Shown one piece after another: positions 11,426 through 57,517 of a stretch of DNA of 64,000 nt. This DNA comes from Pocillopora damicornis (Eukaryota). Each line of letters opens with the position of its first letter. Within the stretch, counting starts at the first letter, position 1. The position numbers were made by a program, and so were the translations under genes. The stretch is taken from positions 310,001 to 374,000 of the forward strand of contig NW_020846475.1 of assembly GCF_003704095.1 (NCBI RefSeq). The letters are read 5' to 3'. The notes below the pieces were generated by a model. That model was not told the DNA's origin, ran no database searches, and saw only the letters and a list, made by a program, of their open reading frames with translations.

Positions 11426-13801
11426 TTATGCTTCCATGGGCTCGCCTTCCTGCTTCCTGACCACTTCGTCTTGCATGGCCGGAATGAGCCCCTTGCGGAA
11501 GGCAACAGAAAGGAGATCTTCAGAAGTCTTGGTCTCAGGATATTGTCGCATTGCCCACCTCAAGTACACGGCAAATTCATTCCAATCCACGGTTCCATCT
11601 TCATCCATATCCATAGCTTTCAAGGCTTGCTTCGTCTCGTCGCACCTGTAGCAACCAAAGTATGGTGCCAAGAAGCCATTGTAAAACGCATCAAATTCCA
11701 GCTTGTCATCTCGCTGGCCGTCCCTCAAATCCCATTCATCCCACATGTCACGGATCTCAGCTATCAATACCTGAGCATGGGCCCTCGTTGGTTCCTCCTT
11801 GGTTAGGACTTCGGCCATTTTTTCAGTGAGATGACCACCAGAACGATCAAACAGCATAGCTAGGCCTGCGGCACTCATGTACTCTTCTTTGATGTTTTTG
11901 TGAAGATCTTCCAACATCACCTCCTTCATTCTCGTGCCTCGTTCGATGGTAAATTGAGGATCTTCTCCAAAGAGATTTTTGAGCCTTGTTACAATCATTT
12001 CAGCAGAGGCCAGTGTGGTCATTCGCATCAGTGGCTCTTCCCCAAAGAACTTCGCCAAGTCGAACTCGTTTATTCCAAGTTTGGTAGGCATACCGAACAC
12101 CATGTCCAAGGCTCGTTCTCCGTATATGGGTTGCAGTGGATATGGCTCGTATCCAGTGGTGACCCTGCAGATCTCTTGTGCAGCTTCTCGGAGGGCTGTG
12201 CAATTGTACTTCTTGAGAACTTTCTTGTTTCCAAGGCGGACCAGGTTCATCAGGGTTACGGTAGAACTGGCTGCACCCATGGATGCTCCTTGTATGATCA
12301 TACTTGCCCAGATACCATTTGCTCCGTTGGCCAAACATGACAACTGAGTGGTGTCCACGTGTCCCCACTTTTCGTGCACGTGAACCAGCAAGTGGCCATC
12401 CTTGAAACCACAATCATCCATTTCTTTTCGAACAGCTCTTATCCACGCTGCAAGCTGCTCTGGGAAGTATTTTCCAGACTCCTCGGTAACGATTCCAAAT
12501 GGACGGATAGCTAGGGGCAAGGAAGATAAATGACGGATGACCTTGAAAACACGCTTTGGCTTTTTGATCATGCCGTCGGGAAGATCGCGCAAGTTGACCA
12601 CCACCTTGGAATCTTTAGCTAGGTTGGCATGGATCCACTTCAATCTCTCGGTAAGAAGGTCGTTGATAGCTTCAACTTTGAACTTCTTGTAATTGATCCC
12701 TACGTAAACCAAATCCATTTCGATGATGGCGTTCCTGATGCCGAGTTCTTTCATTTTCCGTAGGCCAACAGGAATGGTCTCGGTATCAGGAACCCCACTT
12801 TTGTCAACGGATTCAAGTAACTCTGTGAAGGCCCAGAGATTAGTGAAGTCTTCTCCTGCATCGTGTAGCTGTTTGATGAAAGTATCACCCAGGCGAGTCA
12901 TGTGGGAGAAGGAAGCGACGATGATGTCTTTGAAGCCGACTTTTTTTATCTAATTTAGAAAAAGAATCAAGGGAAAAACGTTTAGAAACGCTAAAACACA
13001 GCTGAAATTTGTTTCGATGATAAAGGCTCCCGCTGTGCCTCTCAAGCGGAGAGACGGTAGAATTCTGTCCACAGTCCTTCCTATTAAACACCCGTTGATT
13101 CAAAGCAATCCTCTCCGGAATTTTTCAAATGTGTTGTTATGACATGGAGCATTTCGACAAATTATCATACCTAAAGCTACGCCGACGTATCGTATAAAAC
13201 GGTTGCATTTAATCATTGATTGGGAAACACGTAAAATACATGCATATATTAGACAAATAACGTCACGGTACTCCGAAGATGCTGAATCGACGTAATGTGT
13301 GGGAATTGAGGCTCTCAAGCATTGGGCAAATTTGAAGGTTCAATTTGCATGAAAATTTTATTCAAGTGGCTCTTGGCACGCCTGTAGGCTTAACTCTTAG
13401 ATTAAGCAAACTGGATCTTTTTTTTGTTGACGCTTACAACTCCAGCTTTCATTTCTTGATGACAGTTGATAGTAGTAAGCTTCTTCATCCAAAGCGTTGA
13501 GTCATTATGATGTTATGTCTTTATTGATATGTTTTACAAATTCGTAGTCATTTCAGACAACAGAAGAATGGAAATCCAACTCAAGGATAAAGCATAATGT
13601 ACCCACCTCCTTGTAAATTTTCCATTTGTTTTCTATGGTATGCCCACGCAACTGACCCACGGTACTTTCACGGAGGGAATTGTCCAACACAAAGACGTCT
13701 AAATTTTTTAGAACCTTGGATTCTTTGCCAGCCTCGTCAATCTCTTTCTGCATTTTTTGGATTCGTTCCTTGTAGTAAGCTTTGTTTGCCATGACGCTCA
13801 T
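11426..13801 (-). CDS. Uncharacterised DRE-TIM metallolyase (2-isopropylmalate/homocitrate synthase-like) with C-terminal EF-hands, 572 aa
   Basis: Exon 13801-13607 (MSVMANK...VFVLDNSLRESTVGQLRGHT...YKE|gt) splices in phase 0 to exon 12949-11426 (ag|IKKVGFKDIIVASFSHM...). Motifs: DNSLRE (cf. DxTLRD), HVH metal ligands, GANGIWAS..GASMGAAS (cf. GA..V..T..GERxGN), QPIYGERAL (cf. KPIVGxNAF) and EF loop DMDEDGTVDWNE. Confidence 0.85.
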
Positions 13802-37300: not shown

Positions 37301-40300
37301 ATGCATACTGATGTTAGGGTGGAAAGGGTGAATGATAACTAAACCCAAAGTCCTTATAGGGTGATGTCAATTCATGTACCTGTATTAGTCACTGTTATAT
37401 CTTAGCTTTAATATTTTTTCATCAGAGCCAGTTTCGGTAGTTCGTGATGGTTACCATGTTGTCCGGGGCCACTTGGTAGAAGTGAAGGATGGAAAGCAAG
37501 TGCCACATAGTGCTTCAGTAGGATCAAAAAGACTTCAAGAAGATGGATTAGGAGTTTGGGGAAATGAAATGCCAGACAATTACGATTTTGAAAGGACATA
37601 CAAAGATTTTTCATACAATAATGCAAATAGTGGAATCCTGTATGCAATGAATGAAGATAAGCTGTATTCAACAGAGCCAGTGTTTGATACTTACGCAGTA
37701 CAGCCGCTATATTATGCAACTGATGGAACGGAAAATGGGCCTGTTAATGATTCATGGACATTAGCACAACAAGAAAAGTTTCGAGCTGATGCCATCGCCA
37801 AAAGTGGACCGAAGCTGGCTTTTATCAAGGACGAATCTCAAAGGGACACTCCTGAAGGGGCTTTGCCGTGTATCATGGGCAGGGACTCACCAGCAGGGAG
37901 CCTCACTAGCTTAGATAGCTTAGACGAGGTTCCTCAGGTTGCAGGGTCTGGAACAGGGAGGGAATTGGGAGCCTCTACTAGGACCAGTATAATGGCCAAA
38001 AGAAATAAAGAAGTCAAATCTGCTGGTAAGAGAAGAGTCACTTTTTCTGATAGCATTGAATTTGATGATGGTGTTACTGGTCAGCTTGTTACAGAGGAGA
38101 AGCAAAGTACCAAAGTATACACCATGTTGTATGCTAGAAATTCCAACAATTTTTACAACACGTCGGTATCAAATTCTTCATCATCAACCGGACACTCGAG
38201 CATAAACCACAAGGGACACAAGCCGTCAGGAACGCATGTAACATCTGTGTCTGAAAAGCGAACAGAACAAAATCCCATTAGTTCAGCTCCCACTTTCATC
38301 AAAACCTTCGGGAAGGATTCCTCTGGGGTAGCTACCTCTGGTAGAGACTCGTCTGTGGCAACTGTTACTCACTCTGACCACCCAAGACCTAAACCAGTGC
38401 CTGTGGAAACTCAAGCAAATACACCCGAGAAAATGCAGGTTCAAGTTTCTTCCATTCACGAAGTGAATAGTTTAAAAGACTTAGGGGAACCCAGTCATTT
38501 AGGTGATGCTGTGAGTGATTCAGAGCTAAACGACAGTCTGGAGGTTGTTAATGATAGCTTAGATGTTGAAACTGATCGAGTAGAGAATGTACCTGGACTG
38601 AAAGATGAAGAAGACAAAACATACCCAGTAAGCAGTTCAGGAAACTGGACTTCTTCTTTCTCGACATCGATGGTGAAAGATTCTTTACAAAGGTTCGTGG
38701 GAAGCACAGCGGAAATCCCCCCTGAATCCCCCCCTGAAGAATATACTGAAAAGTTTCCGTCCAACGAGAATCGTGTGGCAGAGGAGTTACCTGTTCAATC
38801 GGAGCCAGTGCATGTAACCGCGTCACCAGTTGTCACATCGGAACATCAGTATCACAGTCCATTCTACAACACAGCAGTTTCTTCTATAACAACTTATCCC
38901 TACTATCACCGTCTTAATCCACAGGTTGCCAGTGGTGTGCAATTTCCTGCCCAAGGAACATTCCATCCCAGTTTCCCTTACCCTTTTTATACCACTGCAG
39001 GCTCTACGTTAATGGCAGAACCCGAGCAGCATGGAATCGAAAATACACCTGCTCCAATAACTTCGTACAGAACTACAACAAACTTTGGTAATGTTCAACA
39101 GGCTCTCAACTCAAGTGACCATCAGAGGAGATCTGCTTCGGAACCCGTTGTTCCTTCATCAACAGTTACTCACGCAGCAAACACGGGCCATAAAGTTAGC
39201 AGTCAAACCTCTGAGACCCCGAAAAGGCCTCCTAGCACTCAGTCGGTTGTAAACAGCAACGAAGCAGATAAAATGTCATTGTCCCCCAACAAGCTCTCAT
39301 CGTCACCTTCATCCACAGCATCAACATACTCTTCGGGTGTTAAATCTACTAGATCTTTTATTCCTCGGCCTCCTTCCACGAAGAAATCTGGCAGAAGTAG
39401 ACTTCATCCAGGTGGTCTTCACAGAAAGGAAGCTTCTACTCGTCCACGGAAGGGAATCAATAACCACACTGTCGTCTCAGATAGGAGTCAAGCTGGACGG
39501 AGTTTGAAGGCAAGTGCAAATCACAGGAATAGCCCAGAAGAAAGGGCAACTGAACAGCAAAACTTGGGAACCAAAAGATCAGAGAGTAAGAATGGAAAAG
39601 AGAAGGCCCATTTCAAACAGCCAAATAACAGCGATAAACACAACGCTTCCGATCAGGACGGTATCATGGAGAGTATTAAACGTAACATGGAGATGATGAA
39701 TATCAGAACGAGGACTACAGCTGCTCAAGAACAGCACCAACGAATTCTTAATTCGCTGAGGGTGGAGTTTGGTGGTGGCAGGAAGGTGCAGCAGGAGTCT
39801 GTGCACTATGGTATGGAGGCTCATGAGGATTTGATGAATGCAGTTAAGCATCACGCCAACACACAGGATGCAACCAGTCGAAAAATTCACCATCCTCGAG
39901 TGGGATCCGCTGGATCACGAAATGGTGCAAGACCTTCAGCTGGTGCAAGCGTCAAGCTGGATCTTGTTGATGATGCTAGTCACCCAGCAGGTTTTGATGG
40001 GTATCCCAACAGAGGTAAAGCAGATATGAAGAAGACCGCGCCTTTCCAAACAGTATCCAGCGAGGCAACGAAAGGAATGGTACGGAAGTCTTCGTCTGAC
40101 TCGGTAACGAATCATCAGTTCACTAACGAAGACAGACGGTTTGAATATCATGTGTCAACAGTCGGTCAGCCAACAAGTACAATTATAACAAGCCAAGAAC
40201 GCGAAGGTCCATTGCAGGCGAGAACTAGCACACGTTATGAACGAGATGACATGAGCATGAAGAGGTCTGTATCACTGGATAAGACACCCACGGATGAAGA

Positions 40301-42898
40301 AATCAATCACCTCTGGGCCCATGTTCGGTCGTACCTCCACGGTGGGAATACTAAGTCCGTCGGCTCAGACTCGTGTGTCAACAAAGTTGACGTACGGCGT
40401 TCCCGTACTCGCTCCAGCTCGACGCGGCAAGTCCACAATCCACCAGCTGTCCCACAGCATAATCAAGGAGGCAGCAGACAGCCAAATGGTCAACACGTCG
40501 GGGTCCCTCCGCAGACTGGGGGCAGTACACTGGGAGGTCTTCGGCGCTACGGCTCTCATGAGGTTCTTAGGAGGGACAGCTCTTCTGACAGTCTATCGTT
40601 GAAGAGGTCACCGCTGTTGCAACATCGTGCTTCAAGAGGCAGACGCCCACAGATCCACGTTCATGGCCAAAATGGCCGACCACCATTGCCGAGACCGTAC
40701 GAGTATAATCCGTCGCCAAGCCAGGCGGGTCCTACAGCTTCAATCTCATGTAGAGGTATAGGTATTAAAGTTCTAAGTGGATGCTTTTGCTTCTTTCTCT
40801 CTTTCTCTCTTTCATTTGCTTGTAGTATGGCTAAAGGGAATTCGATAATCTCTCAAGCGTCAGTGGGTGCATGAGAGCCACTGCTATTCGGACTGCAGAA
40901 GGGTGAGAACTCCAGCTCCAAAACACCTTGACCTGATTTGTTTCATTGCGTGTTTCTATGTAGTTCCTGGTCCGCAACCATTATCGCCGGCTGAGATGCA
41001 AGCTGTTATGATGGCGTCTGAGAAAGAAATGTTTAACAATCATCAACAAAATGCCTTCGCCGATATTTCTCCACATCAGCAGTATCAAGCAATGATGAAC
41101 GGCTTAACAGGTCAGTTTCTGGTCCGTCTGCTTGAATGTTTCGTGATAAGATTTTTCTTTGGCTCTGACCAACTCTCGAAATGGCTCTGTACTGTAAAAA
41201 TGCTAATTGGTGTTAATAGCTGTCATGCTCTTTCAAAACTGAAGAATTGACATTTCTATGATATTCAATAGCTGTAATTTTGCGCTTTTTTCCTTCGTGT
41301 TTTATGTAGGTCCTAGTGCTCTTTCATTGGAGGAACAAAGGTTGTTGCAGTCTTTGGATCGATTAAATGAAAGGCTTAAAGGTATCAGAACTATTCACTT
41401 CGTGCCTTTATGTACTTCTGTGTGCTACAAGTCGTTTCGCTTTGATTAGAAATAAAGGGGGTAAGTTTCTAGAGAAACTGTGGGGCTGCGTCGGTGGGAG
41501 AGCACCACAGAGTAATTTAGTATTATCAACTGAGTTGATAACGTGAATTGGCCACCGTAAAGAGTTTCAAAGCTGACGTTTCGAGCTTTAGCCCGTCGTC
41601 AGGGTGAAAGGCTAACGTCATACGTTCTGACGAAGGGCTAACGCTCGAAACGTCCGCTTTGAAACTCTTTACGGTGGCCAATTGACGTTATCAACTCAGT
41701 CGATAATACTAAATTGCCTACCTTTTACTAGAAAGTTTGGTTGATGACATCTCTGCGTTCTAGTCAAGGTTTCACATAGCGCCTGTTTCCTCTGTTAGAC
41801 TGTCCCAGCAACTCTACCAGTGATGTTAACACTACTAAAGACCTCTTCCTTGACCGTAAAGGAGGCATATCATGATATTTCGCGTTGTTTATCCCTAAAA
41901 AAAAACTATGCTCATCTTGCATGAAGTAGTCCAGAACATATCAACGTGTAAACAACAAAAACAACAAAATATAAATGGTTAGATATAATTTATGAAGTAT
42001 AAGAATGGTAGGTGGTCGTAAAATACAAAAAAATACTACAGAGGAGAAGGAAAAAACGTAGAAGGAATAGTGTTAAATTGAGATCAGGAAGATTTAAACG
42101 GGTGCAAATCAATAACTTGAAAAATTGAAATAAAATGTCACAATATCAGGGCTGTGATTTAGCGTTCTCATCTTACTCCCTAAAATGTTGTGATTCAAAT
42201 TTGACCTTTAATTTATTTGATTTATGTAAAGCTCAAGAAGAAGTCACAAAAGTCATTACTCAGAAACCCAGGATGAACGACAGTGGTTTTCGAAGGCCAC
42301 AACAGGTATCTCATTAACTGGTCATGAAAAAAAAAAGTGCTGGCTCTTTTCGGCCTAAATCGTGGGGCTTTCTTTATCGCGCAGTTTCAAGAAGAGCTAT
42401 GTCCTTTACTGAGAAATAGAGTTGGTCATGAGCACCAATAGAATTGGAATGAAGACTTCGAGTAGAATTTTGATTATACATGAAAACGGGCGTTAGTTAC
42501 TGTTACATAAGTCAGCTCCTCAGTGAGTTGCATTTGGTTCAGTTCATAAATCATCTGACTGCGAAATCGGATCTAGTGATTGTCTAGTTATTGAAGACTC
42601 AGATTTCTTTGGTCTGATGCTCTTGTAGTTTCGATTTCTGCTTTTTTCTCGAGTTCGCTCTGTGATCCTTCCTTGGATGTGAGCATGTCACTAACGTTTT
42701 ACCAGATTGTTGCACATCACTAGTCAGCTGGACTTCATGAATATTTCCTTCCATAGACTGTCATTGTGAAAAGCATTTCTATTCTACCTTTATTTATCAT
42801 CGTCAATCAATTTTTTTCAGAGTGCTCCTGGTTCGGGGATAAGAGGAACAGGGACTAAACAGAATTCTTCAGCCAGAAACTTCCTACATACGAGATGA
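34394..42898 (+). CDS. CEP126: Centrosomal protein 126 (KIAA1377)-like
   Basis: Exons 34394-34413 (MLKGAYS), 36225-36347 (DKFKS..RAKELSKETNRRRK), 36800-36970 (ALEDRKKE..EEQLRDKVLSKRKQDQQEATQRFQK), 37426-40755 (3.3-kb low-complexity exon containing LDKTPTDEEINHLW), 40963-41110, 41310-41381 (SALSLEEQRLLQSLDRLNERLK), ~42232-42305 and 42821-42898. The N-terminal coiled coil and C-terminal SLEEQ..L.SL..L.ERL motif match CEP126 as recalled. Confidence 0.8.
34414..36224 (+). other. U12-type (minor spliceosome) GT-AG intron
   Basis: 5' site GTATCCTTT; branch-like TTCTTTGAC (36206-36214) about 10 nt before the AG; no polypyrimidine tract; the phase-2 join keeps the frame (TC|T = Ser). Confidence 0.8.
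41514..41715. mobile_element. Foldback element with 89-bp arms, each carrying a minimal hammerhead-like motif
   Basis: Arms 41514-41602 and 41627-41715 are near-perfect inverted repeats. Each reads CTGACGA-nGGGCTAAnGCTC-GAAACGTC outward. A degenerate single arm lies at about 4350-4445. Confidence 0.8.
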
Positions 42899-43975
42899 TA
42901 TACAGAGAAACCTAGTTAGTCTCGTGAATCACGGCCCATTTGATAAGTCACGAAGGAAGATAACACTCCAATACGGAGGGGGCCACAGATCGCACGAAAT
43001 GAAACAGGGTGGAAGAACCTTTATTAAATAANNNNNNNNNNCCTCCTCTCTCCCCTCTTCCACGTCAGCCCTAGTTACCTTACATTCTCTCAGGACCCCC
43101 TTCATAGTGGTGGGCATGATTTGTTATTCCTTTAAGTGAATGCAAAGAAGCATAAGACTGACTGGCTAGAAAGGCTAAGTTACATGCATATAAAAGAAGG
43201 GTAATTCGTCCCGCCATTTATGATAGAAGTCTGTACACATAAAGGATGTAAGAAAAAAAACGCTACCTTTGTTCATTCAGTGCTGTTAGCAACAGATCCT
43301 TTTTCATTCGTCCTCCTTGGTTTTCAAAGGAGATGTGGTGTAATCAGTCAAGAAGTATTTCTTTTCTCATCATGAGCGCTTTATACCAGAGATGGCTTTT
43401 TCGTATTATTTCACGCATTGTACAAATTGTATAGCGACTAAAAACTCCAAAGTGAGTTATTTATTATTGTACAGCGAAATGTTACTAAGTGACAAGTAAC
43501 CGTTGTGGACTAGATTGTAGGAAGGGTGGTGTGGTGTGTGTAGAAGAGCTTGCTGTAGAAATATAAATCTAGAATAAAACGGGTGATTATTACAAATATC
43601 TTTCTAATGGTACACTGTTGAAGTTTGTTGACTATCGAGAAATTGTTCCGTGAACGTAAAACGTGAACAATAAGAGCCTTGTTTCGGATGATGTTTTCCA
43701 AACGTTTGGGCTTCAGTTTTGAAGACTGAGGTACAAGTTAAAAAACGCGACGGATTAACAGAATTGTAAAGTTGACTGAGCAGATGAGGGACTGGTGCGG
43801 AGCTTAAAGATTAAACGCTTCACTCGCATAAAATCATCATGATGATTAAAAGCTTAAAGAGTAAGGAATTCCCATAAGGGAATAGCTAATTTTAAATTCA
43901 AGTTTGCCCAAATCAAGATAACTGCAGCCGTTCATGACATTTGTTTGCCTCTTCGTGTTAAAAAGTTCTGCAAAG

Positions 43976-45025
43976 ATGCACATGGAGGAAGCAGCGAACC
44001 TTCTCTCCGCTCTTCAGGAAACGTTAACCGACATTGACACAGTCGTAACAAACGTGAACGAACACTGCAGCCGAACCATTCTTAATATTGAAACTGCGGC
44101 GCAAAGACTCTTGCAAGCCATTGCAGATCACCGACACAAGTTGGTGTCGAAGGTTTGCGAAATCACTGAAGCAAAATTACACGCGTTGCAAGCCGAAAAG
44201 GATATCGTACAGGAGAATTTCAGAGCTCTAGAGCATGTGCTCCGCTGCGCCCAGAATACTGGAACAGTCGAGGATTCGACTGAATGGGACAACGCTTTGT
44301 CAAGGCATCTTCATGATCTAAAAGAATTGGTGTTTGATTTCCAGGATTACGACGAAGAAATGGAATTCCATTTTTTGTACCGTGATGAAAATATCTTGGC
44401 GGCAATTTGCAACTTCGGAGATGTTTTCACACTTGCAAATGACGAAGACTCTAAAATAGCAAGTCGTGATGCAAAGGCTGCTAGACTGGGTAAAAACATA
44501 ACCAGTCTGACAGAGGAGGAGGAAAAATTGGACGGCAAAACTGAATTCCAACACACTACCGACAGAGTCGCTTTACTACAAGAATTCCAAGAGAACTTCA
44601 AAAGCCCAGACCACACGACAGAAACCCAAGAGGCCGATTTAAAAAGAACAGTGCTAACCAAAGTTTTCGAAGAAACAGTGGATGTTGTTCAATTGATCGA
44701 GATAAAGGGCGAAAGCCAGGAGCTACGCTGCGAAGACGACTTAGCATCAACTTTGGAACTGGTTGACGGAGGGATTAGTGATTCGAGTGCGAGAGACATC
44801 ACCTGCAACGAAATTGAACAAACTACAGTTCTTAGGCAAAACTGGTCGGATGTTTTCACTCCTTTCGAACAACTTGTCTCCACTAATGAAGAGGTCGAGG
44901 TCTCGGCTTTTACTGTGGAGGAGACATCGAGCGCCGAACTCGAAAAGAAAGATGTAAACAATAATAACAAAATCGTCGTCGATAGGAGTGTTGTGACATT
45001 ACAGGAAGACAGTTTTTCAGCATAG
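43976..45025 (+). CDS. Coiled-coil (TRIM BBC / ARA70-like) protein with an acidic tail
   Basis: Single-exon ORF of about 349 aa. The N-terminal ~155 aa are heptad-rich and end 'MEFHFLYRDENILAAICNFGDV', similar to the ends of TRIM coiled-coil and NCOA4 ARA70 domains. No RING or B-box is present. AATAAA at about 45214. Confidence 0.65.
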   Translation: MHMEEAANLLSALQETLTDIDTVVTNVNEHCSRTILNIETAAQRLLQAIADHRHKLVSKVCEITEAKLHALQAEKDIVQENFRALEHVLRCAQNTGTVEDSTEWDNALSRHLHDLKELVFDFQDYDEEMEFHFLYRDENILAAICNFGDVFTLANDEDSKIASRDAKAARLGKNITSLTEEEEKLDGKTEFQHTTDRVALLQEFQENFKSPDHTTETQEADLKRTVLTKVFEETVDVVQLIEIKGESQELRCEDDLASTLELVDGGISDSSARDITCNEIEQTTVLRQNWSDVFTPFEQLVSTNEEVEVSAFTVEETSSAELEKKDVNNNNKIVVDRSVVTLQEDSFSA

Positions 45026-46418: not shown

Positions 46419-49400
46419 TTAAGTTCCTGTTCTCTCTCGTACCACAGCCTGAAGTGCCCAGCGATCTCGGAAGAGCCTGTAGAGAATCAGGTAATTAAAC
46501 GTCAGGAGCCCAGTGACCGAGAGAAGCTGGTGCCAAGAGTGGGACCTTGTTATCATAAACAGCTGATATAAGACAAGTAACAACAGAACTGCTGCCATCC
46601 AGTTGACGAGTCGCAAGGGAGATTCGAACATGAACTACAAAACAAAGTTATTGCGCGTCAGTATCGATAGCAAATAAGCTCGCTAATAAATTTTCACCAG
46701 AAGCCATACAGTTATTATTTCCGTCAGCAAAAAGTACACATGAAATACCCAGTAAACAGGCTTCGGTTGAAAGGGTTGGGAAGGACCTGACGTCGACTGA
46801 GGGGGTAGGGGTGGGGGTGGGAAATGGTGAGCCCCCCCCCCCCCAGCTCTTTTCTTCCCGCGTGGGTGGGGAAGTGGTGGGTGATGCAATGTCTTCGGTT
46901 ACCCTTTTTTCGGCAACAAGTTGTTTTAAGGGGGTGGATCAGGGAATTCAAGCTACTGAGAAACTGCTTTTGGATCCATTCCGTAAACAAAGAGCAATAA
47001 TGTAAACGTATCAACCAGCACCGCTAAATGACGCTGATCTACAGTTCTACGGATGGGAACAGTCTTAACATAGCATTGCCCATTTCAAAAGAAAATCCAA
47101 AGGCAGAATGAAATAAAGCCAGGCAAGCAAGCCAGCAACTTGCTGAATAATTCTTAGTGTTTAAATACTTACGAAAAATCTTCCATGATGCGCGTCCCCT
47201 GGGATTGCAACATTGTGAATACCGAGCGCTCTGTATAGAAGTTTACCATGCCGCACCAGGACCCCCTGAGGCCATACCGTTAATGCTGACCATCTAGTGG
47301 TAGTGACAAAAGATACCGATTATCATGTCAGCGATTAATATGTTAACTAATAAAGTCGTGGACTAACGGAAAGAAGTACATAAAGCTTAAAATTAGCTTC
47401 TTGCTGATTTTTTTATTTACTCTTTCTGATTTGAACTAACCGAAAGTCCGTCAGGTTACAAACCACACTTTTAAAAGAGCTCCTGCGGAGGTCATCGGAT
47501 TAAAATGACCAACACATCTCAATATAAATATACAACTTACACATGTGGAGTGTCGCGGTGACCGCAGGGATATCTCTCCCATCCGCCAAGATGCAGTGCA
47601 CACTTATGTAAAGCGTCACAATAATTCAGCGGTAACATGTACATCATTAACATTAGCAAACAGCTCAGCCAAACGAAAAGCGTGTGCTGACAAGCCCACC
47701 ACATGTCGTAATACACATAATGTTGCTGTGAAAAGATCAAGAACTTACATAAATATATCAAGAAAGATGGCAAAATTTAGAAGGCAGTCGTCAAATGGAT
47801 AGTTTTTTTTCCTTTTTCTTGAACGTAAAGAAAACAATCTGAGTCCCCGTAGGAGCAATCAAGCCGCAGACCTCCGGATTTCCCGGTTCCATCCTCCAGT
47901 ACTGAGATGCACAGACCTCGCAGATAAGCAGGCCAAATTCAAGGTATACATGTGATAAACGTTCTGCATACTACTAAAATGACGCCGTTGTCAATTCCAA
48001 AGCATATTTCAAACTTCAACAAGTACCTACTCTTTCGGACAAATGAAGGATTTGCAAAGGACAGATATCATATACCGGTAGCCAGTTTTTCTAAGGGCCG
48101 ATAACTCGATCCAACAGATAAATTACTAACGGAATAAGTGTAAACAAAACGTACCACGCTATCCACCGGACAGAGATTTATCCATTGGATAGCGATATTA
48201 ACCTTTCAAACAACCTTGAAGAGGTTTGCAGAATAATTAGATAAAACACATAACAATATTCAACTCGTCACTGACCATCACGGAGTCAAGTTATAATCCT
48301 CACCTCTGAGAACTTCATCGGAATAAACCCAACATAGTAAGCGCATACGAGTGACTGAAATAGAACCTGTTTGATCCGAAGATTAAAATCGGTTCTCAGG
48401 CATTCTGTTTCGTATCGCACTGCATCCGGTGGCAGTGAACATGGTTGAGGAGCTGGTAGTTCCTGTTTAGAATTTCCGTTCACCATTACACCTTTAGCGT
48501 CCAGTAGGCTGCTCTGTAGTAGCTGTAGCTGTGATAATGGGCCTAGCTCTTGGTGTGGACTCAGTTTAAGCATTACTTTATTTCCCTGGGGATCCAGGGT
48601 GAAGCCAAACGTAATTATATACATCACTGACCTGGAGAACAAGAAAATCTCTATCATTAAACACTTAATGACTTTTCCGGATAAAATAGTTTGGTTCATC
48701 CGATGAAAATAATTGATGGAAAGTTATGTTTGCATAAAGGAAACAGCTCTAACACAAAAACAAAAAACGCACAGAAAGCTTCCACATTGTGCACAATTTC
48801 AATCTTCATTACCAAGAAGACAATAGTCATTTCATACAAAAACAACCCTTAATCAGAGAGATATTCAAGGAAGTTCTCTTAATCACTTATAGAAAGGAAA
48901 ATTACTCAAAGATATGCTCATCACTAAATAAATTTCATCCAAAATAAAGACATGAACATGATATAGTTATGATACTCACGGGTAGCAGAGAAAAAGGCAA
49001 TTTTGTATACTGTTTTGCTGAATAATTCTCCATGACAACCATACAAAGCTTGACACAAGTGATAGAAGAGCCACGCCCTTCAGGAAGAGGTTAACAAAAC
49101 ACTTGACAGTGCATAGTACTTCCGAGGCTAGTGTCTGTAAAAGTACAAAATAAATAAACAAAAATCAGGGATATAGAATGGATTTTCCAATGGGGGTTCC
49201 AAGACTAAAGTTTTATGGGTATTAAAACACACACTGATTTGAAGGAAGGGGTTCACATCAATCCAATGATGCTCGTCACTCCTAGGGGGTCAAGGTATTT
49301 ACCACTAAGAGTGACTAGCATCTAATCCCTCCTAACAGTACCATCACAGAACCAAACATTAAAGTCACAAGAATATGAATATAAATATGGACACAACCCC

Positions 49401-56491: not shown

Positions 56492-57517
56492 TTAAGACGA
56501 CTTCCGTGATGTTATTTCCGCTTGTTGGATTTTGTTCGCTCTGATCTGAGAAAAAGACCTGCGCGTATTTGTCCAGATAGTTTTAAATTCTCTTTTTATA
56601 ATCCTGTTCAAGTATCCGTATAAATAAGGATTTATAACTCCCGTGGAGTAATAAAGTCCAGAGACAATGGACTGTAGTAATTCCGTCCCATAATTTCTTG
56701 TGTGTGAGGACCACAGGTTTACCACTATATATGGTGTCCAGGCGATAAATAACACTCCAACGATCGAGGCCAATGTCAAAGCTGTCTTGATATCTGCTCT
56801 GAGGGCAGAATGCGGCTTGCGCATGCAATATTGTCCCGATATGACCGCCGCTGACACTTGTGCACCAAGTTCGGGCTCAAGTACTGCAGCCATTTCCCTT
56901 TGACGCAATGCCTTTACTTCGCGGGCGATTTGCTTCGAATGACGTAAAGCTACTCGCAGTATACTGATGTAAATAAAAATAATAGAAACCAGCGGCATAA
57001 AGTAGATTGTAGTCATTTTGAAGTATGTAAAACTAACGGATATGTGGTAATTGGATTCGCAAAGCCACTGTCCAGGGAAAGCATAATAACGACTCCATCC
57101 CAGAAGAGGATAACACGCTGATAACAACGCATAAAACCAGATGAAGAATATGCATAAAACGGTCCTGTTACGGGTTACCCAGCCTTTGTATTTCAGAGGA
57201 GTTAGTATGGCTAGATACCTGTCCATGCTAACTGATAAAAGCGTCAAAACTGAGACTGCGCTCGTAGCATGTTGGAAGAATCCAATGATGTCGCAGCCAG
57301 TTTTACTCACGACAACGTAATTACTTGCCGTGGTTGCGATGCTGAATGGTAGTAGAAACAACGCCACCAGAATGTCATTGATGGCCAAATTCACAAGGAA
57401 AATACAGGAAGGAGAATGAAGACGCCTCACTCTATAGATAATGTAGCAGATTGCAGTGTTCCCAATGACTGTAGACACGATCATAAACACTATCACCACA
57501 ACTAAACCCACAGCCAT
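56492..57517 (-). CDS. Orphan class A GPCR (GPR161/GPR101-like features), intronless CDS
   Basis: 341 aa with 7 TM segments: GN (TM1), NLAIND (TM2), C3.25 and DRY, W4.50, PLLGWS, AWTP and NPYLY. An acceptor at about 57604 and upstream donors (about 57746, 61600, 61774) suggest 5' UTR exons. Confidence 0.92.
   Translation of the reverse strand: MAVGLVVVIVFMIVSTVIGNTAICYIIYRVRRLHSPSCIFLVNLAINDILVALFLLPFSIATTASNYVVVSKTGCDIIGFFQHATSAVSVLTLLSVSMDRYLAILTPLKYKGWVTRNRTVLCIFFIWFYALLSACYPLLGWSRYYAFPGQWLCESNYHISVSFTYFKMTTIYFMPLVSIIFIYISILRVALRHSKQIAREVKALRQREMAAVLEPELGAQVSAAVISGQYCMRKPHSALRADIKTALTLASIVGVLFIAWTPYIVVNLWSSHTRNYGTELLQSIVSGLYYSTGVINPYLYGYLNRIIKREFKTIWTNTRRSFSQIRANKIQQAEITSRKSS

Follow-up and report, generated by a model that had tools for sequence, protein, structure and literature searches.

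The window analysed here is a stretch of 64,000 nucleotides from the stony coral Pocillopora damicornis (GCF_003704095.1, contig NW_020846475.1, positions 310,001 to 374,000), and the gene under study occupies positions 11,426 to 13,801 on its minus strand. This is a bona fide animal gene whose spliced RNA is expressed; its product of 572 amino acids has a predicted DRE-TIM barrel followed by a pair of EF-hands. In the predicted model the barrel is nearest to the Claisen-condensing synthases, above 3-hydroxy-3-methylglutaryl-CoA (HMG-CoA) lyase. The gene is probably a stony-coral paralogue of ilborin, a protein first found in larvae of the sponge Halisarca dujardini (Borisenko et al. 2022, Open Biol 12:210336, PMC8864356), the Halisarca ilborins A-D of GenBank MT559266-MT559269 having been compared by description only. 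The window adds one more member to the ilborin family, and the central claim was published in 2022: the architecture, the remote homology and the idea of a Ca2+-regulated enzyme, which the initial annotation of the window had treated as new, are already in print under this name, and P. damicornis is among the species listed there (Borisenko et al. 2022).

Gene structure, fold and family membership

The gene consists of two coding exons (65 + 507 = 572 amino acids) that are separated by a single coding intron:

13607..13801, minus strand: coding exon 1, 65 amino acids with the ATG at 13801; covers the N-terminal helix, the first barrel strand and the DNSLRE motif
12950..13606, minus strand: intron, 657 bases, GT..AG, with the donor GT at 13606-13605 and the acceptor AG at 12951-12950
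11426..12949, minus strand: coding exon 2, an open reading frame of 507 amino acids (12949..11429) and the stop codon TAA (11428-11426); covers strands 2-8 of the barrel, the helical subdomain and both EF-hands

The joint 12949->13607, which skips the 657 bases, is present in RNA-library contigs of all four runs, each from a different study, and the splice ends that read CT..AC on the plus strand correspond to GT..AG on the gene strand. RNA contig depth is 4-9 in the intron and 700-2700 in the exons; contig depth is a poor gauge of expression and shows that the spliced RNA form exists. The spliced 572-residue reading frame that had been proposed from the DNA alone is thereby confirmed. The proposal of one coding intron holds for the coding part and probably not for the whole gene, since an additional non-coding 5' exon upstream of 13817 is likely because some RNA contigs part from the window sequence at ~13817, directly after a ttcag acceptor. 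The protein is probably cytosolic.

Full-length analyses of the protein were conducted with P0002, a natural orthologue of 574 amino acids that is 91% identical, and the two exons were searched separately. An AlphaFold2 model of P0002 based on an alignment of 52 sequences (predicted local distance difference test score 91.7, predicted template modelling score 0.84) displays an eight-stranded beta/alpha barrel (strands 37-40, 73-78, 103-108, 138-144, 181-186, 217-222, 251-257 and 277-281) that is followed by a helical subdomain and then by a paired EF-hand, with domain limits of approximately 35-346, 347-450 and 455-535, respectively. The best solved matches in Foldseek are homocitrate, methylthioalkylmalate (MAM), citramalate and isopropylmalate synthases, with probability 1 and E values down to 4e-13, the latter for homocitrate synthase. 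Alignment with VIA-align places the model as follows:

LiCMS: Z 32.6, root mean square deviation (rmsd) 2.5 Å over 297 residues
Homocitrate synthase: Z 31.9
Isopropylmalate synthase: Z 31.6
HMG-CoA lyase: Z ~26
DmpG-type aldolases: Z ~24
Carboxyltransferases: Z ~20

The match to isopropylmalate synthase 4ov4, MAM synthase 6e1j and the homocitrate synthase SaHCS 6ktq extends to residues 434-446, into the post-barrel subdomain. The modelling and structure search thus agree with the initial annotation, which had assigned the protein to a DRE-TIM barrel like that of the Claisen-condensing synthases, and the TIM barrel, the R-[DE] after strand 1 and the HxH on strand 7 are all present. By sequence the barrel is far harder to see: the best NCBIfam match is a weak one below threshold (TIGR03217, E 0.017), and phmmer and family-profile searches against PDB sequences returned only EF-hand proteins and left the barrel undetected.

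The motifs that had been picked out in the DNA are found in the protein at the following positions:

13667-13684, minus strand: DNSLRE, residues 40-45, with the Arg-Glu after barrel strand 1
12374-12382, minus strand: HVH (His255/His257), residues 255-257, strand 7, predicted metal ligands
12272-12289, minus strand: GASMGA within QGASMGAASS, residues 286-291, glycine-rich strand-8 loop
12092-12157, minus strand: post-barrel linker TGYEPYPLQPIYGERALDMVFG, residues 330-351, without the HxSGxH histidine motif
11687..11731, minus strand: first EF loop, non-canonical, DLRDGQRDDKLEFDA; when Leu is kept at 8, positions 3, 6 and 12 are Gln, Asp and Ala
11684-11731, minus strand: divergent partner-loop stretch DLRDGQRDDKLEFDAF, from residue 472
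11576-11611, minus strand: canonical EF loop DMDEDGTVDWNE, residues 512-523, with D1, D3, D5, G6, V8, D9 and E12

The EF-hand pair occupies the place of the LeuA regulatory domain, as had been suggested, and shows the usual paired fold in the predicted model; the family profile matches calmodulin, centrin and troponin C among PDB sequences. Judged from its residues, the first loop is probably not Ca2+-binding, and one Ca2+ per chain would be expected because the second loop is canonical and the first is not. This agrees with the single EF-hand per ilborin in the published description (Borisenko et al. 2022).

Ilborins were described as proteins of 560-610 amino acids in which a C-terminal EF-hand follows an aldolase-type TIM barrel. 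HHpred matched them to homocitrate synthase 2ZTJ (2.9e-21) and HMG-CoA lyase 1YDN, and their conserved residues comprise an Arg for the substrate, a Glu for the metal that corresponds to the one in homocitrate synthase, and two His (Borisenko et al. 2022). Orthologues were reported from sponges, many cnidarians including stony corals, ctenophores, echinoderms and Macrostomum, together with two cyanobacterial homologues (Moorea producens and Okeania hirsuta) and a full-length match in Hondaea fermentalgiana (A0A2R5GS87, via HHblits) (Borisenko et al. 2022). The coral protein has the TIM barrel (P0002 model), the canonical Ca2+ loop, a length of 572 amino acids and the residues R44, E45, H255 and H257. 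Its membership of the family is supported indirectly, because the same relatives were recovered (P0135, with E 3.5e-89 in an exhaustive HMMER search, is Hondaea A0A2R5GS87, and the published Okeania hirsuta and Moorena homologues were found again) and because the Ca2+ loop lies at 512-523, compared with 514-526 in Hdu_ilborin A. A further indirect tie is given by proteins of Nematostella and Dendronephthya, which are 62-66% identical to the coral protein. A full-text search of one literature collection found the name ilborin only in Borisenko et al. 2022 and found no biochemical characterisation, and a search for DRE-TIM together with EF-hand found no paper.

Active-site residues and candidate functions

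The motifs were placed by profile alignment (hhalign) with a homocitrate-synthase-like protein and LeuA, both from an Okeania genome. DNSLRE aligns with DSTLRE(GEQ), and HVH aligns with HAH(ND) of the homocitrate-synthase-like protein and HGH of LeuA. Consequently the RE of the coral protein, listed in the initial annotation as a deviation from RD, is the state of homocitrate synthase, as was also noted for the family (Borisenko et al. 2022). The linker TGYEPYPLQPIYGERALDMVFG (stretch PLQPIYGERALDMVF) aligns with PNKAIVGANAFAHESGIH of LeuA, GASMGA aligns with GERAGN, and ALDMVF (family consensus ALDxVF) aligns with AFAHESGIH, which bears out the reported replacement of the HESGIH histidine motif. 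The replacement of GERxGN by GASMGA is likewise present, but the form GASMGA is confined to this copy and the two orthologues closest to it: GERxGN is not kept in the family either, where the loop reads GAxxGH with the consensus GA[AS]xGH.

Across 52 sequences, of which the most divergent has 27% identity, nine residues do not vary (D40, N41, R44, E45, E142, D187, E221, H255 and H257), the two His of HVH among them. The family has an invariant set of its own, comprising Glu142, Asp144, Asn184, Arg186, Asp187 and Glu221, with His291 in most members. The invariant charged set lies at the strand ends, which argues for a real active site that differs from those of the known enzymes. Metal-assisted enolate chemistry on a 2-oxo acid would be the generic expectation for this fold. 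A divalent metal may be held by Glu45, His255 and His257 beside Arg44 and could polarise a 2-oxo-acid-like substrate for enolate (C-C bond) chemistry, and Ca2+ on the EF-hand would alter the activity or the binding of a partner. The published proposal is that Ca2+ turns on the enzymatic activity of ilborins (Borisenko et al. 2022).

Several observations weigh against reading the coral protein as a metal-dependent, Ca2+-regulated enzyme of this kind. The two Pfam models that the initial annotation had singled out, HMGL-like (PF00682) and EF-hand, do match, but both below their cut-offs: HMGL-like reaches 13.2 bits (E 0.061) against a gathering score of 29, and the EF-hand matches have E values of 8e-4 to 4e-3. 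Two relatives exceed the HMGL-like cut-off (P0264 with 36.5 bits and P0141 with 30.2 bits). Several residues of the known DRE-TIM enzymes appear to be missing, since the HxSGxH motif is absent from the whole family, with LDMVFG in its place, the strand-2 Glu (IEV) aligns with Ile74 at an alignment probability of only 13.7%, and the strand-5 Glu (S-x-ED) aligns with Arg186 in a low-confidence alignment. That Glu45, His255 and His257 come together at a single site is a prediction from homology, and His291 is missing in this copy. In the sponge, ilborin is the most prominent protein of the larval flagellated cells (Borisenko et al. 2022), which would also fit a structural or buffering role.

If the protein is an enzyme, it could be a true Claisen-condensing synthase that joins an acyl-CoA to a 2-oxo acid and responds to Ca2+ instead of amino-acid feedback. 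The nearest folds are precisely these enzymes (Z 30-33, approximately 6 Z units over HMG-CoA lyase), the post-barrel linker and helical subdomain are kept in the alignment with 4ov4, 6e1j and 6ktq to residues 434-446, the R-E and HxH match those of homocitrate synthase, and the relative P0129 carries a fused Abhydrolase_2 domain of the esterase/thioesterase type. In LeuA, homocitrate synthase and LiCMS, the partner subunit contributes a catalytic His through the HxSGxH motif, and this His together with the strand-5 Glu forms the pair that deprotonates acetyl-CoA. A classical Claisen condensation is unlikely because HxSGxH is missing, with LDMVFG in its place family-wide, and because the strand-5 Glu is apparently Arg (Arg186, low-confidence alignment); furthermore, the substrate-lining residues of strands 4-6 all differ. 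As far as these residues can tell, the protein is probably not a classical acetyl-CoA Claisen synthase, and the missing Claisen histidine would narrow the candidate chemistry.

The second alternative is that the protein, or at least this copy, is a pseudoenzyme with a non-catalytic Ca2+-binding or scaffolding role. Position 291 is Ala in the window protein and its two nearest orthologues, where 50 out of 51 aligned relatives have His, and the proteins P0001 and P0003 likewise have Ala. A role of this kind would also suit a family whose sponge member is the major protein of larval flagellated cells (Borisenko et al. 2022), as would the very high RNA contig word depth seen here, though this is a poor gauge of expression. 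Against it, the remaining invariant pocket residues are kept: at positions that are at least 85% conserved, P0002 departs from the 51 relatives only by His291->Ala and Thr326->Cys, both of which the window protein shares. The ratio of nonsynonymous to synonymous substitution rates (dN/dS), calculated against the 91% identical orthologue, is 0.13 in exon 2 (506 codons) and 0.06 in exon 1, and the coral copy is therefore under purifying selection despite Ala291. In addition, charged residues at the C-terminal ends of all the barrel strands are invariant across animals, protists and cyanobacteria, which is the mark of an active site. Position 291 aligns with the Asn of GERAGN in LeuA, and the Asn at this position is a metal ligand in HMG-CoA lyase and not in the synthases; the loss of His291 may be tolerable for this reason. 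We regard a non-catalytic role as improbable, and a metal-dependent enzyme with a family-specific active site remains the preferred reading.

Family range and the ovoA neighbourhood in cyanobacteria

The homology search returned 655 relatives, headed by stony corals, octocorals and Nematostella, and the exhaustive HMMER search of 1.84 billion representatives returned 724 clusters at E<=1e-3. The best named relatives are those of Oculina and Desmophyllum (78%) and Porites (73%), followed by octocorals and Nematostella (62-66%). Among protists, members were identified in the diatom Pseudictyota (P0247), the dinoflagellate Gymnodinium smaydae (P0141), MMETSP transcriptomes and the labyrinthulomycete Hondaea (P0135). 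A phylogenetic analysis of 67 rows (quick IQ-TREE, midpoint root only) places the window gene as sister to P0002, followed by P0003 and then Desmophyllum, Oculina and Porites, and this stony-coral set is nested in an anthozoan group with the octocoral and Nematostella proteins; the order of branching agrees with the division into corals, octocorals and sea anemones. A second anthozoan paralogue group includes a further copy from the coral's own genome, which contains three additional loci:

C1129:796621-798360 (L002/L005): paralogue, match within a 644-amino-acid open frame with an insert of ~69 amino acids; GAALGH
C4382:832680-836315 (L003/L004): paralogue, one piece with GAALGH and one piece with a TAA inside the match
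C3685: paralogue fragment

The first of these is the copy in the second anthozoan group, and because it matches within one long open frame, the small number of introns is a trait of the family and not a mark of recent transfer. The TAA inside the C4382 match could be explained by an intron or by a broken copy. Three relatives carry further domains: Abhydrolase_2 (carboxylesterase/thioesterase type) after the ilborin-like part in P0129 (901 amino acids), rhamnosidase and PAN domains ahead of it in P0150 (1459 amino acids), and a SnoaL-like domain after it in P0142 (1070 amino acids). These fusions were rejected as a functional clue, as the partners are mixed and the proteins may be merged gene models.

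Among prokaryotes, a single-pattern search of genomes of 185,579 species identified eight loci, all Moorena/Okeania/Dapis-like, that are 87-94% identical to each other and 31-32% identical to the coral family. In the tree this cyanobacterial clade joins a diatom-type clade (SH-aLRT 100), apart from the animals. Among 401 evenly sampled cyanobacteria, matches were found only in Okeania and in genome G301, which has one distant homologue that lacks the EF-hand. The old horizontal transfer from bacteria that the initial annotation had considered is not supported, as the gene is nested in a cnidarian clade, protists have members and the cyanobacterial holders amount to one tight clade and one distant homologue. 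The G301 homologue (L026:417-7838) lies beside DUF1156 and HEPN_Swt1+DUF499 genes, near psaA/psaB, in surroundings that look like a defence island.

In seven of the eight cyanobacterial loci the ilborin-like gene is located directly downstream of ovoA on the same strand:

L010:2232-6331: ovoA and ilborin-like gene
L011:3347-7746: ovoA and ilborin-like gene
L007, L008, L009, L013 and L014: the same pair, with ovoA in L009 interrupted by an insertion of ~2.2 kb

OvoA is the 5-histidylcysteine sulfoxide synthase with an N1-methyltransferase domain; OvoA scores 621 bits against a cut-off of 400 (TIGR04344), and 215 against 170 for the methyltransferase domain. Four further genes with the same orientation come after the pair in L010, encoding a sarcosine/dimethylglycine-type N-methyltransferase, an M24 peptidase, an SbnA-like pyridoxal phosphate (PLP) enzyme and a PLP decarboxylase. 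In the eighth genome the two genes are on different contigs. Okeania OvoA has its closest relatives among bacteria (Myxococcota 70%, Competibacteraceae ~55%), and a joint transfer of both genes from a eukaryote was rejected on this ground. The coral's own ovoA is a multi-exon gene on another contig.

This neighbourhood is a weak functional lead, which suggests that the ilborin family might act in thiohistidine (ovothiol) metabolism, on the product or a by-product of OvoA. The seven pairs point in this direction, as do the presence of both genes in the eighth genome, the presence of ovoA in G301, the only other sampled cyanobacterium with a homologue, when OvoA exceeds the cut-off in 66 of the 401 sampled cyanobacteria, the coral's own ovoA, and the overlap between the animal phyla that hold ilborin and those that hold OvoA (PMC8864356; PMC4768315). 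However, the seven linked loci count as one evolutionary event because they are 87-94% identical, and their co-occurrence is confounded by the frequency of each family among marine organisms. Linkage to ovoA was looked for and not found in Myxococcota (whose ovoA is the nearest outside the cyanobacteria at 70%), a tar-biofilm metagenome-assembled genome, G301 (where the distant homologue does not adjoin ovoA) and two contigs of the diatom-type clade. OvoA is present in molluscs and annelids (PMC4768315), from which ilborin was not reported (PMC8864356), and it is not evident what a DRE-TIM enzyme would do chemically in the known OvoA/OvoB pathway. We consider an ovothiol function very unlikely, and the same holds for its fullest form, in which ilborin-type proteins would be Ca2+-gated enzymes of ovothiol metabolism, the cyanobacterial pair a surviving operon of a link hidden in eukaryotes, and the Ala291 copy of the coral a variant that handles metal or substrate differently.

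Contamination from a prokaryote or symbiont, or a recent bacterial transfer, could account for an intron-poor gene with homologues in cyanobacteria, but its probability is negligible and it is refuted by the RNA-confirmed GT-AG intron, the animal flanking genes, the Desmophyllum, Oculina, Porites, octocoral and Nematostella orthologues that branch by group, the gene with a dynein DHC_N2 match that was called next door to the Desmophyllum orthologue, and the grouping of the 31-32% identical cyanobacterial proteins with the diatom-type clade. The placement of the gene among animal genes, as initially described, is correct: dynein heavy-chain DHC_N2 exons lie on the same contig 10-13 kb left of the window, and the window itself contains two ordinary animal neighbours (the first two features below) and two open reading frames.

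56492-57517, minus strand: single-exon rhodopsin-family G-protein-coupled receptor (7tm_1, E 6e-47)
48286-48699, minus strand: one exon of a Tmp39-family membrane protein (E 3e-22)
37473-40874, plus strand: uninterrupted open reading frame of 1133 amino acids, no Pfam match, located where the GC content of the window peaks (0.45)
43934-45025: open reading frame of 363 amino acids, no Pfam match

Comparison with ilborins and other DRE-TIM enzymes

We know of no isopropylmalate- or homocitrate-synthase-type enzymes from animals, and a conserved, apparently well-expressed family that combines a synthase fold with a calcium sensor therefore points to an unknown metabolism in corals, sponges and marine protists. 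This significance for animal metabolism was set out in 2022 (Borisenko et al. 2022). The present analysis contributes a wider range (diatoms, dinoflagellates and labyrinthulomycetes), a narrowed set of candidate chemistries, the Ala291 variant and the cyanobacterial ovoA neighbourhood, the last of which offers a cheap hypothesis that is testable in bacteria.

The coral protein resembles the published ilborins in length (572 compared with 560-610 amino acids), in the order of barrel and C-terminal EF-hand with a DxDxDG loop at nearly the same position, in the Arg-Glu and His-x-His residues, in its remote homology to homocitrate synthase and HMG-CoA lyase, and in having cnidarian paralogues and the identical Hondaea and Okeania/Moorena relatives. 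It differs from them in that the family His of GAxxGH is Ala in this copy. The diatom and dinoflagellate members, the intron-poor structure and the ovoA neighbourhood go beyond the published account (PMC8864356).

With the Claisen-condensing synthases (PDB 2ztj, 3ivs, 6ktq, 3ble, 4ov4 and 1sr9) the protein has in common the barrel, the post-barrel linker, the helical subdomain, the HxH on strand 7 and the glycine-rich strand-8 loop, and with homocitrate synthase also the LRE after strand 1. The structural agreement is close (Z 30-33, rmsd 2.5-3 Å over ~300 residues) but the sequence identity is 12-17%. The HxSGxH and GERxGN of the synthases are absent from the coral protein, with GAxxGH of the family (GASMGA here) in place of the latter, the strand-2 Glu and the strand-5 Glu appear not to be kept, and the LeuA_dimer or RAM regulatory domain of the synthases is replaced by the EF-hand pair. 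HMG-CoA lyase and 4-hydroxy-2-oxovalerate aldolase (DmpG/BphI) share the DRE-TIM barrel and the metal site, but their structural match is lower (Z 24-26), they have no post-barrel subdomain in common with the coral protein and their C-terminal domains are different.

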